DNA of 64,000 nucleotides from Felis catus (GCF_018350175.1 NC_058380.1:91388001-91452000); one strand, 5' to 3'; shown: positions 44,731 to 60,448, numbered from the stretch's first letter. Numbers and translations: made by a program. The notes: generated from the letters alone by a model not told the origin.

Positions 44731-46590
44731 CCTCCCCTGACCGGGGCTCTCTCAGTTGTCCATCTTAACCAGAGCCCATAAGGCTCTCGCTGCCCATCCC
44801 GTCAGGCACCTGCTCACTTGCACACCTCCCACACCCGCTCTCCATAAATGGCTTTGGAAACTGAGACCCAGACACTAGCCTGAGGTCACACAGAGCAGCA
44901 AAGTCGGGCCCCATGGGACAGCTACGCTGCTCCAGTCTGTTTTGCCCGCGTGGGCTTCGTCACCAGGAACAGCGACCTCTCTGAAGGAGCGGGGCAAGGC
45001 CCATAGCCAGGTGCAGTTCGGCCTGGACAGAGCAGAGGGGCTGTGGCCAGAAGAGGCTGAGACTGTCCAGGGTCAGGCACAGGGCCCAGTGCTGGTCACT
45101 GGAGTGCTAGCCTGCCACGTGGTAGCTGGGTTAGGTCGGGGGGTGGCACTGTGCAGGTCCCCGGCAGCTGTGGCCCCCCGCCCAGTAGTTGCCAACACGT
45201 CCTCTGTCCTTTCTCTCACCTGAGGGTTCCCCACAGGCAGAGAGAGGGTAGACACCAGGGAATCAGGGAAGCCCGGCTTGAGGAAACAGAAAGGAATGGG
45301 GCCTCCATGCTGGGTGGGGTCAGGTTAGCACACAAATACGTGACAGCAGGGCACGTGCTGACCTGATGGGATGCCGGAAAGGGCCACCCCACCCTGGGCG
45401 GGTGCGTGTCCTCGTGGGTTGCCCCACTGGCCTGTCCAGCTGTCTGTCGGACCTTCCGCATACCCCTCACCCTGTCCAGCTGTCCATGAGTCCTGTCCTC
45501 GGACCCTTCTCCCAACGACTGTCCCCCTCTCCATCCACTCCTCTGCTAGCTTGCTTGCCCACACCTACTCAGCCTCATGGTCACATCATCCTCTTTGAGC
45601 CTGTCAGCGTTGAGCACAACCTGGTCACACTTGTGAGCCAGAGGCATGCCTACTGGGGGCACAGTGGAAGGACAGCAGTGACGCTGACTCTCTGGGGGGG
45701 GGGGGACACACGGCAGTCCTGGTGGGGGGGGCTATGGGAACCAGCTTTGCTGAGACCCCCCCAGTCTGCTCCTCTTGTCTTCTTCCCTCTGGCATTATGA
45801 GGTCTCGGCTTCGAAAAGCAGGATTTGCCTTCTAGAATTGGGGGTGGGGGTACTCGACTAGGACCCAGGGTCGGTCAAGCGGGACTGGGGTGGGAGTACT
45901 GGAAAGGGGTGTCGCGGGGGTCCCGATTCACACGCGGCCCGCAGGGAAGGGCAACCCCGGGAACGGGCACCAGGCCCGCGGCGATGGAGGGGNNNNNNNN
46001 NNNNNNNNNNNNNNNNNNNNNNNNNNNNNNNNNNNNNNNNNNNNNNNNNNNNNNNNNNNNNNNNNNNNNNNNNNNNNNNNNNNNNNNNNNNNNNNNNNNN
46101 NNNNNNNNNNNNNNNNNNNNNNNNNNNNNNNNNNNNNNNNNNNNNNNNCCCGGAGCCCCGCGCCCCGCGCCCCGAGCCCCGCGCCCCTGGGAGCCGCCGT
46201 GCCGCGCCATCGCCCGAGGTCGCCGCCGGAGCCGCTGGAGCCGCTGGAGCCGCCGGGCCGAGGCGCGGGCGTCGCATCCGGGCCTGCCTTTGAGACAACC
46301 TCTGCGGCGGCGGCGCGCGCGGCCCGGGGACGCCAGGCTGGGGCAGGTGAGCTCGGGCGGGGCGGGGCGGGACGGCCGCGGGGTCGCGACTCGCCTCCTC
46401 TTCCCACCCGGGCAGGGGTTGGGCCTTGGGGGCGGGGGGTGGGGAGGGGGCTGGGTCCCAAGTCCAGCGAGGGTGAGGGTCAGAGGTCGGGAGCCCTGTC
46501 TTCTGTGCGGGGTGAGGGTGGGCCCCGGGCGCTGCCCTCACGCTGTCTCTCACCTGCAGCTCGGGCCTGGTCCAGGCCTCTCTTCTGCTC

Positions 46591-47112: not shown

Positions 47113-47910
47113 ATGCCGGCTGACCCTGGGCCCGAGGTGGGCAGTGGCTGGCCAGGCCTCCTCATGTCCTGCCTGAAGGGCCCCCATGTCATCCTCAAGA
47201 TGGAGGCCATGAAGATTGTTCACCCTGAGAAGTTCCCCGAGCTGCAGGCGGCTGCCGCTTGCTTCCCACCTGCACCGAGGCCCACCCCTGCTCTGGCACC
47301 CAAACGCGCCTGGCCCTCAGACACAGAGATCATCGTCAACCAGGCGTGTGGGGGGGACATGCCCACCTTGGATGGGGCGCCCCGCACCCCTCCGTTGCCA
47401 CGACGGCCCCGGAAGGGCAGTGTGGAGCTGGGCTTCCCCCGCGTGGCGCCAGCGGACGAGGTCATTGTCAATCAGTATGTGGTGCGGCCCGGCCCTGCCG
47501 CCTCGGGGCCCCCCGCCACGGCGGCACCGGCTTCAGGTGAGCCCCTGGAGTGCCCCACCTGCGGGCACACGTACAACGTCACCCAGCGGCGGCCCCGCGT
47601 GCTGTCCTGCCTGCACTCCGTGTGTGAGCAGTGCCTGCAGATTCTCTATGAGTCCTGCCCCAAGTACAAGTTCATCTCCTGTCCCACCTGCCGCCGGGAG
47701 ACTGTGCTCTTCACGGACTACGGCCTGGCCGCACTAGCCGTCAACACGTCCATTTTGAGCCGCCTGCCACCCGAGGCACTGACCGCCCCATCCGGGGGCC
47801 AGTGGGGGGGCGAGCCGGAGGGCAGCTGCTACCAGACCTTCCGGCAGTACTGCGGGGCCGCGTGCACCTGCCACGTGCGGAACCCGCTGTCCGCCTGCTC
47901 CATCATGTAG
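47113..47910 (+). CDS. RNF208: RING finger protein 208, single coding exon, 265 aa
   Basis: MPADPGPEVGSGWPGLLMSCLKGPHVILKMEAMK...; RING CPTC-x15-CLHSVCEQC-x15-CPTC; ends CSIM. Acceptor at 46913, ATTAAA at 48054-48059. Confidence 0.95.
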   Translation: MPADPGPEVGSGWPGLLMSCLKGPHVILKMEAMKIVHPEKFPELQAAAACFPPAPRPTPALAPKRAWPSDTEIIVNQACGGDMPTLDGAPRTPPLPRRPRKGSVELGFPRVAPADEVIVNQYVVRPGPAASGPPATAAPASGEPLECPTCGHTYNVTQRRPRVLSCLHSVCEQCLQILYESCPKYKFISCPTCRRETVLFTDYGLAALAVNTSILSRLPPEALTAPSGGQWGGEPEGSCYQTFRQYCGAACTCHVRNPLSACSIM

Positions 47911-49441
47911 CACCCGCCCGCTCGACGCTGCCCGCCAGTCCTTGCTCGCCGCTTCTTCAGGGATCCGGCCCTGCCCTGTCGCCTGTTGACCCCTCACCCA
48001 CCACTGCTTCCGGCCCCTCCCCGTGTGGCACTGCCGCTGCAACCAACTCTGCCATTAAAACTCTTTGCCAAAGTTTGCACCTTGTTCCCTGGACTGAAGC
48101 CTGCTCTTGCGGCCTGTGCCCAGGGCTGTGGCCCAGACAGGGTCCAGCCTGGAGCCACCAGAGGGAGGCCCAGTGCCTCTTGGGGCCAGCCTGCTCTGCT
48201 TGCCAGGGAGGGACCAGGCTGGGCCAGGCATGCCGCTCAGGAGGGCTGGGCCTGGATGTGCATGTGCGTGTGTGCACGTGAATGCCCCGCACGTCTGTGC
48301 AGAGCCAGCCTTCTGTGTGTGCTGGTGTGGGCAGAGGTGCAGAACGGGCAAAGGGCAGACACGTCCTCTGCACCGGCCCCTGGATGTGGGGGCAGCTGTA
48401 CGGGGGACACCTCAGTCCACCGGGCTCCTGGTGCCCACCAGACCCTCTGAACTTGAATGGGAAGGGCCTTTGGGCCAATCTGAGCCAGGACTGAGACCAA
48501 GACTGGCTGAGATCCTGGTGGGGTAGGAGGACTCGGGGGACTTCTATCTCATACTCCACTACCTGGATTTGGGGAAGAGCCTTTGCAGTGGAGGGGGGAG
48601 GAGGGAAGGTTTGGGGAGAGTCCCTGGATGCCGAAGAAGGGGTAGAGACAGCAAGAACACGGTAACAGTGGTTTCAGGAGAGCTGCCGTCTATTGAGAGC
48701 CATTCCTTGCGCTGGGCACAAGCCCGCGAGGTCGTTCTGTGTTTGTCCTTTAGATAAAGGACTCAATGACATGAGGTTGCAGGGCACTGGGCCTCAGCTC
48801 AGTGCTCCCCAGCTCCAAGGCCTGGCGGGGCCCTTGTTCCTTGCAGTTCGGGCACCTGGCCGCTCGGGCCGCCCCCTTGGGTCCTGACCCAGCCAGTGAG
48901 GGAGCTATTTGTGGCCTGAGCTTGCGCGGCAAGGGCCCCTCCCCTCTGGTGCCCTGTCCTTCAGGGAATACACACTGGCCCTCATCTGGAACATGACCAG
49001 GTGGGGGGACCTGCACCCAGGGCCCCGCTCTCTTCAAGGAGTCACCTCACTACCAGACGTCTCTGTTCACTTTCGTGTCCGCTGTGTCCCTCTTGCAGAC
49101 AGGCCGGGCGGGGCAGGGAGACGGGGTGAAGACGGCTGTGTCAGTTTGGGACCCTCCCGTCGAGGGGGTGCTTGGGGGGCCCTGGTTGCAGACCTCCTCC
49201 AGCACCGCCCTTGGGCATCAGTAGCGTCTGGGCGGCAGGGTAGTTTGAAGTCTCTGGCTCGGTCGGAGGCTGAACACAGGTTCCTGGGTAGCCCTGGCCC
49301 CAGACCTGGTTCTTGATTGAAGGCCGGCGCCCCACTCAGTCTTGGGTTTTTCAGCTTGGCCATCAGGCCTCAGGGCAAGCCCGGGCCTCCTGGCCCCTCG
49401 GCGGCCCTGGTGGCGCGGGCGGCAGGTGTGCCGGGCCCTGC

Positions 49442-50166
49442 TTAGTGGCCAGCGCGGTCCAGCAGCATAAAGAGGAGCCCCAGCAGCATGAGCGGCGTGA
49501 AAACGAGCAGCAGCCCCAGCAGCTCAAGGGCCAGCAGGCCCAGCAGCACTAGGCGGCGGGAGCAGGGCCCCCGTTCCCGCAAGGCCCAGAGCCGGGCACC
49601 CAGGCAGGGCGGGCAGGGCAGGAAAGGCAGGCAGCCCCGGCCGCCCACGGGTCCCGCCAGGAAGCGGAGCTGGTACCGGTGCTCCAGGGACGCCCAGGGC
49701 CCAGGGCCGCGGCGGGCAGGTGCGGGGGGCGTGGGGGGCCGCGGGCCCTGGGGCCCGTCCGCCTGCAGCAGCTCCTTCTGCAGCTGGCAGATCTCCCACT
49801 CAAGCATGGGTGTCCTCTGGCGACAGAGCGGGCAGCAGACCCGGCCCAGGTCGGCGCTGGGGGCCGCGACCAGCAGCTGGTGCAGGCAGTCCACACACAG
49901 GCCGTGGCCACAGTTCAGCAGCGCCAGGCGGTGCTCACTGGGCCCGTAGGGCTCCGTGCAGATGGGGCATTCCTCTTGCCCCGGTTCCCCCGCTGGCTCC
50001 CCCTCCTCCCCCTCCCTTGCTCTCCCAGCCCAGGGGCAGGCCGTGGCCGTGGCCCCCAGGAGGGGTTCACTGTCTCCAGCCCCTGCACCCTGGGTATTCC
50101 CAAGAACCCTGCCGCCCACCTCTTCATCTGCCAGCCCTGGGTGCGGGGGGGCCAGGCGTTCAGGGC
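49442..50166 (-). CDS. Uncharacterised RING-HC (C3HC4) protein with C-terminal hydrophobic/transmembrane segment; start codon unresolved
   Basis: Open frame of more than 300 codons containing CPICTEPYGPSEHRLALLNCGHGLCVDC...CPLCRQRTP (49823-49969), a Pro-rich linker and LVLLGLLALELLGLLLVFTPLMLLGLLFMLL before the stop. Strong acceptor (ccgtccaccttccacag) at 50167. Confidence 0.75.
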
Positions 50167-50982
50167 CTGTGGAAGGTGGACGGGGGAGCCCAGCGCTGAG
50201 GTCACGGGGGCCATGAGTGGGGGCCCCAGGGCAGGGGTCAGGATGGGTGGGTGGGGTCCCCAGGGTGGTGACGAGGGTGGTTGGGGCCGTGAAGGTCAGT
50301 GCGGCCCTCTGGGTGAGGGCAGGGCCTGGCACAGACCTCGAAACTGCCGCAGCCTCGCCCCACCCCGGAAAGTCAACTTCACCTGGGCCCCAGCGCTTGT
50401 GCTGGCTCCGGGCAGCTCCTGGGCCCACGAATGCCGTCTTCACGGGATCTGCCCCAGCCCGGACGTGGCCGCCTCAGCCCACTCGTGTCGGCAACTGGCG
50501 GACAGACAGGCGGACTCCAGGCAGCAGCCTTGTGGGTAGGCGGGAGGGCTTGACTCCTCCTACAAGAATTCCCCTCGGAGCACCGAAGGCCCTTCCCAGG
50601 GGCGGGGACAATGGCTGCCCCACCCCCCGCCCCGTTCCCACCCGAGGGACTGCTACTCCTGGGACCGCTACTCCTGGGACTGGCAAGGAATGGTCAATCC
50701 CCACTTGGCCAGGGCCTCCCCTCACCCTTCCTTCCAGGGCCCGCTTAGGCTGGCCCCTGCTTGTCGGAGTCCGGGCAGAGCCCATACAGCGTGGGCAAGT
50801 AGAACACATCGCAGAGACTCAGACCCGGAGAAACTACTGCAGCAAAGACGGCTGAGCTGTGGTGCATTTGTGCTCGCCACGACTGCTGTCCCCGTCCAGA
50901 CACTGTGGGCCCACACACGCCCTGAGGCACCCAGACAGGCACGCGGAAGAGCAGGTCAGAAACAGCCAACAAGAGCCCACAG

Positions 50983-50988
50983 TTTATT
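50983..50988 (-). terminator. Polyadenylation signal of NDOR1
   Basis: TTTATT on + strand, about 525 nt past the stop. Confidence 0.7.
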
Positions 50989-51513: not shown

Positions 51514-59990
<8,477 letters not shown>

Positions 59991-60037
59991 NNNNNNNNNN
60001 NNNNNNNNNNNNNNNNNNNNNNNNNNNNNNNNNNNNN

Positions 60038-60448
60038 NNNNNNNNNNNNNNNNNNNNNNNNNNNNNNNNNNNNNNNNNNNNNNNNNNNNNNNNNNNNNNN
60101 NNNNNNNNNNNNNNNNNNNNNNNNNNNNNNNNNNNNNCGCTGCGTGTGGACGGCCTGGCCCCCGGCCTCTCCTGGTGGAACGTGTTCGTGCCCTTTTTCG
60201 CCGCTGATGGGCTCAGCACCTACTTCACCACCATCGTGTCCGTGCGCCTCTTCCAGGACGGAGAGAAGAGGTTGGCAGTGCTCCGCCTCTTCTGGGTCCT
60301 CACGGTTCTTAGCCTCAAGTTTGTCTTCGAGATGTTGTTGTGCCAGAAGCTAGTGGAGCAGACTCGGGAGCTCTGGTTCGGCTTGATCACGTCTCCGGTC
60401 TTCATTCTCCTGCAGCTGCTCATGATCCGCGCCTGTCGGGTCAACTAG
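60038..60448 (+). CDS. TMEM203: Transmembrane protein 203 (N-terminus lies in the N gap; start inferred from a 136-aa orthologue length)
   Basis: Visible part LRVDGLAPGLSWWNVFVPFFAADGLSTYFTTIVSVRLFQDGEKRLAVLRLFW...LLMIRACRVN*. AATAAA at 61276-61281. Confidence 0.9.
   Translation, partial: XXXXXXXXXXXXXXXXXXXXXXXXXXXXXXXXXXLRVDGLAPGLSWWNVFVPFFAADGLSTYFTTIVSVRLFQDGEKRLAVLRLFWVLTVLSLKFVFEMLLCQKLVEQTRELWFGLITSPVFILLQLLMIRACRVN

Follow-up and report, generated by a model that had tools for sequence, protein, structure and literature searches.

The window, by which we mean the whole stretch of 64,000 nucleotides of Felis catus DNA that was analysed (GCF_018350175.1 NC_058380.1:91388001-91452000), contains a RING-finger gene located between NDOR1 and RNF208, with RNF224 (39555-40313, minus strand) also nearby. 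In the translation of the minus strand, the gene appears as a stop-free frame of 333 codons (49442-50443) that extends from a GTG to a TAA. NDOR1 lies upstream on the same strand and terminates at 51516-51514, and RNF208 converges on the RING ORF from the plus strand, its coding sequence finishing at 47910. RNF208 itself ends in CSIM (47896-47910), a lookalike of the CaaX prenylation box. The RING ORF is preceded by an in-frame TGA (50476-50474), and its first in-frame ATG is found at 49807 (Met213), past the last zinc ligand of the RING; a product starting at this codon would be without the RING. These observations agree with a preliminary description of the locus, which had placed the gene right behind NDOR1, on the strand that NDOR1 also occupies, and had pointed out that no AUG precedes the RING here.

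Because the AATAAA of NDOR1 is at 50988-50983, the RING gene starts at most ~540 nt from the end of NDOR1. A promoter of its own may be marked by two GC boxes, GGGGCGGGG and CCCCGCCCC (at 50633 and 50607), in a context where the CpG o/e is only 0.50. Within the 1.9 kb that follow the stop codon of the RING gene (47500-49441, minus strand), there is no AATAAA or ATTAAA, and only an AATAGA is present, at 48694. RNF208 has an ATTAAA on the plus strand at 48054, and the 3' ends of the two genes may be close together. Note that the window contains runs of N upstream of RNF208 (45993-46148) and inside the TMEM203 region (59990-60137). The coordinates of the individual features are collected in Table 1.

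Table 1. Features of the RING gene and of the region between it and NDOR1, in window coordinates
Feature	Position	Strand	Basis or remark
Stop-free frame, GTG to TAA, containing the whole RING-to-TM coding sequence	49442..50443	-	ORF translation
Eutherian frame-conserved core, residues 61-333; minimal coding region accepted	49445..50263	-	Frame test and tblastn boundaries
C-terminal hydrophobic helix (predicted tail anchor), with 4-5 residues beyond	49457..49555	-	Kyte-Doolittle >2 and AF2 helix
Cys-rich juxtamembrane stretch GCLPFLPCPPCLG	49598..49636	-	95% column identity in eutherians
Post-RING helix EWEICQLQKELLQAD, nearly invariant	49757..49801	-	Alignment and AF2
C3HC4 RING, C159 to C206; E2-contact Ile161 and Pro204, linchpin Arg207	49826..49969	-	Pfam, invariant columns, AF2 and Foldseek match to TRIM32 RING
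Two ACG codons (residues 132 and 134), gccACGg context	50042..50050	-	Context scan
DSEPLL in the disordered leader; conserved EPLL motif resembling an acidic dileucine signal	50057..50074	-	Most mammals and many sauropsids
Proposed 216-nt intron	50167..50382	-	Motif scan (motifs present) and frame test (comparative data against)
CTG (Leu61), top candidate near-cognate start, context accaccCTGg (ACCACCCUGG)	50261..50263	-	Kozak context and conservation
In-frame TGA; Arg (inferred CGA) in earlier same-species model and three felids, Gly in cheetah	50474..50476	-	Protein models
Predicted 231-nt GT..AG intron of felid gene models, frame-preserving	50495..50725	-	Felid models
Two GC boxes, possible own promoter	50605..50633	-	CpG o/e 0.50
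Felid ATGs 50809 and 50785, in frame with the RING ORF; RefSeq felid models start here	50783..50809	-	Felid models
AATAAA of NDOR1, the sole minus-strand AATAAA of the area	50983..50988	-	~540 nt upstream of the ORF

The translated ORF consists of an acidic leader, a complete C3HC4 RING, a Pro-rich linker, the juxtamembrane stretch GCLPFLPCPPCLG and a hydrophobic C-terminus, as had been described, and translation, Pfam and Kyte-Doolittle analysis bear out each of these parts. Pfam places the RING at aa 158-209, where both zf-RING_5 (2e-08) and zf-RING_2 (1.6e-07) exceed their cut-offs, and the Kyte-Doolittle value is above 2 over residues 297-329. Across 43 vertebrate orthologues from reedfish to cat, the eight zinc ligands are invariant in C3HC4 order and spacing, and so are the residues that follow C7 (Pro) and C8 (Arg); the Ile after C1 is kept in at least 90%. 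In the numbering of this alignment (A1), P101, P146 and R149 are invariant and I102 nearly so. When AlphaFold2 was run on the alignment of the 43 orthologues, the leader was modelled as disordered (pLDDT <50) and the RING with confidence, followed immediately by a helix, two short helices and a 40-residue terminal helix at pLDDT 90-98. Since the only predicted TM helix is at the extreme C-terminus and the acidic, disordered N-terminus is without a signal sequence, the layout is that of a tail-anchored protein, and the model suggests a ligase whose RING would face the cytosol. Its E3 activity, topology and localisation are read here from the sequence and are to be taken as predictions.

The best matches found by Foldseek to the modelled RING are E2-binding TRIM RINGs (TRIM32 and TRIM25), among which the TRIM32 RING (PDB 5fey, 2ct2) is the closest in structure, with 42% identity and an rmsd of 1.2 A over 54 columns. 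A TRIM protein is nevertheless ruled out, as there is no B-box or coiled coil.

The RING-to-TM part of the protein retrieved 142 homologues from all the eutherian superorders and opossum. The best of these is the cheetah 'ring finger protein-like' (XP_026906852.1; E 8.8e-156, 99% identity, full coverage), and the orthologues of other mammals show 60-87% identity to the RING-to-TM part. A search with the alligator orthologue gave 175 homologues and added birds, turtles, squamates, newt, frogs and reedfish. In RefSeq and UniProt, 'ring finger protein-like' predictions are listed for well over 150 vertebrate species (mammals, birds, reptiles, amphibians and reedfish); elsewhere, the orthologues carry automatic names such as RNF182, RNF183-like, RNF225-like and RNF208-like. 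The gene is real and intact, and it is already known as a prediction, so the word 'hidden' that had been applied to it is not appropriate. We consider it likely from these comparisons that the locus represents, in felids, a gene found throughout the vertebrates, predicted by the databases and uncharacterised, which encodes a membrane RING ligase in a conserved frame from ~50263.

The homologue matches include a 201-aa human 'hypothetical protein', and the unnamed predicted locus that had been mentioned for the human position does exist. The human counterpart is probably LOC122513141 / A0A2R8Y4M4; the rows taken as human (P0058 and P0060) were excluded from the alignments and tests beyond the initial comparison, and two unlabelled primate-like Logan proteins (P0030 and P0036) were used in the first alignment only. 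LOC122513141 appears as an unnamed human RING E3 in the E3-ome census (PMC13061254, supplement) and in a preprint, which predicts a contact with PLPP6, as an unknown protein of the ER membrane (bioRxiv 10.1101/2024.10.01.615885). The name RNF228 was considered for the locus and dropped, since its Gene ID and its UniProt entry are different ones, its context is chromosome-2-like, and no link to the locus could be made. Our literature search found no functional study of the 'ring finger protein-like' gene, nor any paper on NDOR1 together with read-through or with 'ring finger protein-like'. Among Logan/ENA contigs, 868 contain the complete mouse ORF and 100 the rat ORF (cluster of P0082), which may reflect expression. 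Several rodent entries named NADPH-dependent diflavin oxidoreductase 1 (Microtus P0281, Apodemus P0241 and mouse P0237) are fragments of the RING protein or fusions with it, and these names are an annotation mix-up between NDOR1 and the RING gene downstream of it.

The RNF183 family is made up of lysosome- or ER-localised E3s with an N-terminal C3HC4 RING and one or two C-terminal TM domains (PMC7313026). The order of a C3HC4 RING and a C-terminal TM segment is shared with RNF183, RNF186, RNF152 and RNF182 as well as RNF222, RNF223 and RNF225, so that the comparison drawn earlier with the RNF152/182/183 type holds; here, there is one terminal helix. When the cheetah protein was used as a query with language-model features, the nearest ESM-Atlas clusters were RNF183-like, RNF183, RNF222, RNF152-like and RNF182 (similarity 0.87-0.95). 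Unlike the RNF183 family, in which the RING is at the very N-terminus, this protein has a disordered acidic leader of at least ~100 aa with the EPLL motif ahead of the RING. In the protein sequence searches, no named paralogue ranked above the orthologues. The two neighbouring RING genes, RNF208 and RNF224, share with this protein the spacing of the RING ligands and a CPxCR..T signature (identity of 34% across 64 aa for RNF208 and of 31% across 105 aa for RNF224) and are probably its local paralogues as judged by sequence. Both are, however, without a TM helix, and the three clustered RING genes may reach membranes each by a different route.

Where the coding sequence begins is a separate question. 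The RING-to-TM part is far beyond chance, as evidenced by its GC3 (0.87-0.92, against ~0.65 in the flanks) and by homologue E-values down to 1e-156. Stop-free runs are common at ~70% GC, so that the long open frame upstream of the RING, taken alone, counts for less. Over residues 61-125, GC3 is 0.58-0.70, so the signature of the RING-to-TM part (~0.9) is missing, and conservation is only ~50-60%.

We therefore compared reading frames among species, using predicted protein models mapped to the window DNA. In a tblastn search of 47 eutherian models, 44 kept the RING frame to at least ~50220-50310. In addition, 18-codon windows were compared with all three frames, where models without a clear match were not counted; note that this test is biased, since gene predictors prefer open frames. 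For residues 61-78, 79-96 and 115-132, the main frame was used by 30, 19 and 28 models, respectively, and another frame by none, and a single model used another frame in each of residues 97-114 and 133-150. Upstream of residue 61 the frames are mixed: the counts of main versus other frames are 12 to 7 in residues 43-60 and 3 to 10 in residues 1-18. In horse, cow, Acomys, kangaroo rat and several bats, for instance, the models have PEGHxDL where carnivores have QRATLTF, which is the same DNA in a shifted frame; the alternative frame of the cat over this region encodes PEGRTDLHGPNHP. Twelve short models, whose starts are ATGs at various places close to the RING, are uninformative on the upstream frame. 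When five felids were compared, unique amino-acid changes numbered 12 in the 45 codons of residues 1-45, against 5 in the 113 of residues 46-158 (Fisher p = 1.7e-4) and 3 in the 175 of the RING-to-TM part (4e-7). By these comparisons, the conserved reading frame is placed as starting at ~50263, which is inside the proposed intron, and it leaves at least 98 conserved in-frame residues ahead of the RING in eutherians; in birds, the corresponding length is ~150 aa.

The absence of an AUG is partly private to this genome and partly eutherian-wide. The private part is due to the TGA at 50476-50474, which alone separates the frame of the ATGs at 50809 and 50785 from the RING ORF. The 378-aa UniParc model of the same species (P0208) is identical to the window at all 333 residues of the ORF and at all 28 residues of the first exon (the exons of the felid models were translated separately), and has Arg at the position of the TGA. 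Clouded leopard, lynx and jaguarundi also have Arg at this site, and cheetah has Gly; the cheetah protein has the same RING-to-TM layout and presumably the same neighbours, whereas in the window the TGA breaks the N-terminus of the felid model. We infer a CGA-to-TGA change in the window relative to the earlier model of its own species, which has the look of either a CpG-transition allele or a difference between assemblies.

The wider part concerns eutherians in general. Outside felids, the frame of the upstream extension is not conserved, and hyena, fur seal and meerkat use other frames. The eutherian alignment contains no conserved Met column, the models begin at points all along the leader, and nine of those in RefSeq, among them those of rat, Arvicanthis, Vicugna, Dasypus and Myotis, are flagged as partial. 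In mouse and rat, there is no upstream ATG ahead of the RING at all, and the mouse UniProt entry A0A2I3BPW1 (P0237), filed under Ndor1, starts at a Met inside the RING and comprises the last 141 aa of the RING protein. Birds (MEPAAGEEAEPG...) and opossum, in contrast, retain a clear AUG. In counting start codons, only NCBI models were used, since the N-terminal Met of Logan, ENA and JGI proteins is often a GTG or other alternative start assigned by a prokaryote-style gene finder on vertebrate contigs (for example, VEAKLC versus MEAKLC in mouse). The suggestion that the gene had lost its start codon here is consequently half right: the TGA, which is absent from the other felid models, cuts off ATG 50809, but the AUG gap is wider, as mouse and rat show.

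Both a conserved ORF ahead of the first AUG and a near-cognate codon in good context, which together serve as the criterion for non-AUG initiation, are present at this locus. The in-frame near-cognates in strong context are ACG 50437, CTG 50263, CTG 50134, GTG 50119, ACG 50050 and ACG 50044. Among these, CTG 50263 (Leu61) coincides with the onset of frame conservation, and of 34 eutherian models in RefSeq, 32 retain Leu61, with Thr or Ala before it, which implies a purine at -3, and Gly, Glu or Ala after it, which implies a G at +4. Downstream of this codon there is an out-of-frame ATG (50214, ccactcATGg) that opens a 99-codon ORF (49915-50214) overlapping the leader as well as the RING's first half. 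This ATG arises from THG codons and is absent in rodents. From the sequence, we give about an even chance to near-cognate initiation of some kind. The preferred candidate for it is CUG 50263, a choice that is tentative. Correspondingly, it is possible, though hardly the expected outcome, that eutherians lost the ancestral AUG and that the ligase is translated solely from this conserved, Kozak-optimal CUG, the lineage-specific AUGs and the felid upstream ATG being irrelevant.

A start at CUG 50263 has to be weighed against several other models. An AUG might be spliced in from upstream, either from a separate 5' exon or from a read-through or alternatively spliced NDOR1 RNA, possibly as an NDOR1-RING fusion. 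The proximity of NDOR1 on the same strand, with its end only ~540 nt away, is consistent with such an arrangement, as are the filing of mouse A0A2I3BPW1 under Ndor1 and the non-RefSeq models of Microtus and Apodemus that fuse the RING protein with NDOR1 or label it as NDOR1. There is also a pyrimidine-rich tandem acceptor (cagAG) at 50310-50307, of which the distal AG alone fits the frame of the 2-base donor of the NDOR1 penultimate coding exon. However, the proximal AG and the acceptor at 50167 are out of frame with the NDOR1 donor, the species differ in frame just 3' of the tandem acceptor (50317-50264), which argues against conserved coding from there, the CDS of mouse A0A2I3BPW1 is not continuous with Ndor1, and the fusion models are automatic predictions. 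We regard a spliced-in AUG as rather unlikely. Initiation close to the RING, at ACG 50050 or 50044 (or at CTG 50134 or GTG 50119), would give a protein of ~200-230 aa resembling the short primate models and would turn everything upstream into 5' UTR. These codons are all in strong Kozak context, six models (fox, lemurs, marmoset and Kogia) have an ATG at residue 134 where the cat has ACG, and the GC3 signature is strong only near the RING. Nevertheless, frame conservation and the EPLL motif reach further upstream than such starts, which are also disfavoured because the ATG at 50214 would intercept scanning ribosomes before they arrive there; we find a RING-proximal start distinctly unlikely.

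Two further models keep the region upstream of 50263 in use. According to the preliminary description, a coding piece starting at GTG 50443 and ending at 50383 is spliced over a 216-nt intron to an exon that starts at 50166. The motifs for this are indeed there, with a GT donor at 50382 (CAG|GTGAAG) and, up to 50167, a strong acceptor rich in pyrimidines, and the removal of 216 nt preserves the frame. Pro/Ser/Thr-rich coding sequence of high GC content, on the other hand, often mimics splice acceptors, and the 3' half of the proposed intron (50263-50167) is frame-conserved in Carnivora, Perissodactyla, Artiodactyla, Chiroptera, Rodentia, Primates, Afrotheria and Xenarthra, that is, in all eutherian superorders. 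Since the conserved frame starts near 50263, within 50382-50167, both the intron and the GTG are unsupported. The piece from GTG 50443, moreover, is the fastest-evolving part in felids and is inconsistent in frame among species, and the context of the GTG is weak, so that we take this model to be very improbable. Almost equally improbable is the model in which the gene is disabled in this genome, the TGA being a nonsense allele of the 378-aa felid protein. This TGA is indeed the sole difference from the same-species model, and four other felids are open at the site, but the N-terminal extension that it would truncate is not conserved in frame outside felids (hyena, fur seal, meerkat), mouse and rat are without any such upstream ATG, and the RING-to-TM part is intact, with 3 of 175 residues differing from other felids.

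In the preferred reading of the locus, the conserved coding frame runs from ~50263 and everything upstream is leader; the TGA at 50476-50474 removes the felid upstream ATG in this genome, which leaves no AUG. The protein would consist of a disordered acidic leader with EPLL, a catalytic-type C3HC4 RING, a helix, the Pro-rich linker, the Cys-rich juxtamembrane segment and a tail-anchor helix, in this order. From the ER or endolysosomal membrane, its RING would face the cytosol, where it would be expected to recruit a UBE2D-type E2~Ub, and the ligase would ubiquitinate membrane-proximal substrates in the manner of RNF183, RNF152 and RNF182. EIF4G2, TEAD1 and STIM2 are mammalian genes that are translated only from near-cognate codons, and this mode of translation has experimental support. 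The RING gene resembles these genes in that its conserved ORF offers no AUG that could be used and conservation sets in at a near-cognate codon whose Kozak context is optimal, although here the likeness is drawn from sequence.

The gene call itself is correct but mostly ordinary, since the databases already hold the prediction, and the non-AUG start is a testable hypothesis. Few RING E3 genes still lack a symbol or a defined start codon; this locus is among them, and the annotation pipelines give it at least 12 different N-termini or a partial flag. A defined start would permit correct expression of the protein, for which a particular CUG and a product of 274 aa are predicted here. If true, the CUG start would be a clean addition to the few mammalian genes listed as relying on non-AUG initiation, and a defined start would open the study of a conserved, predicted tail-anchored ligase beside RNF208 and RNF224.
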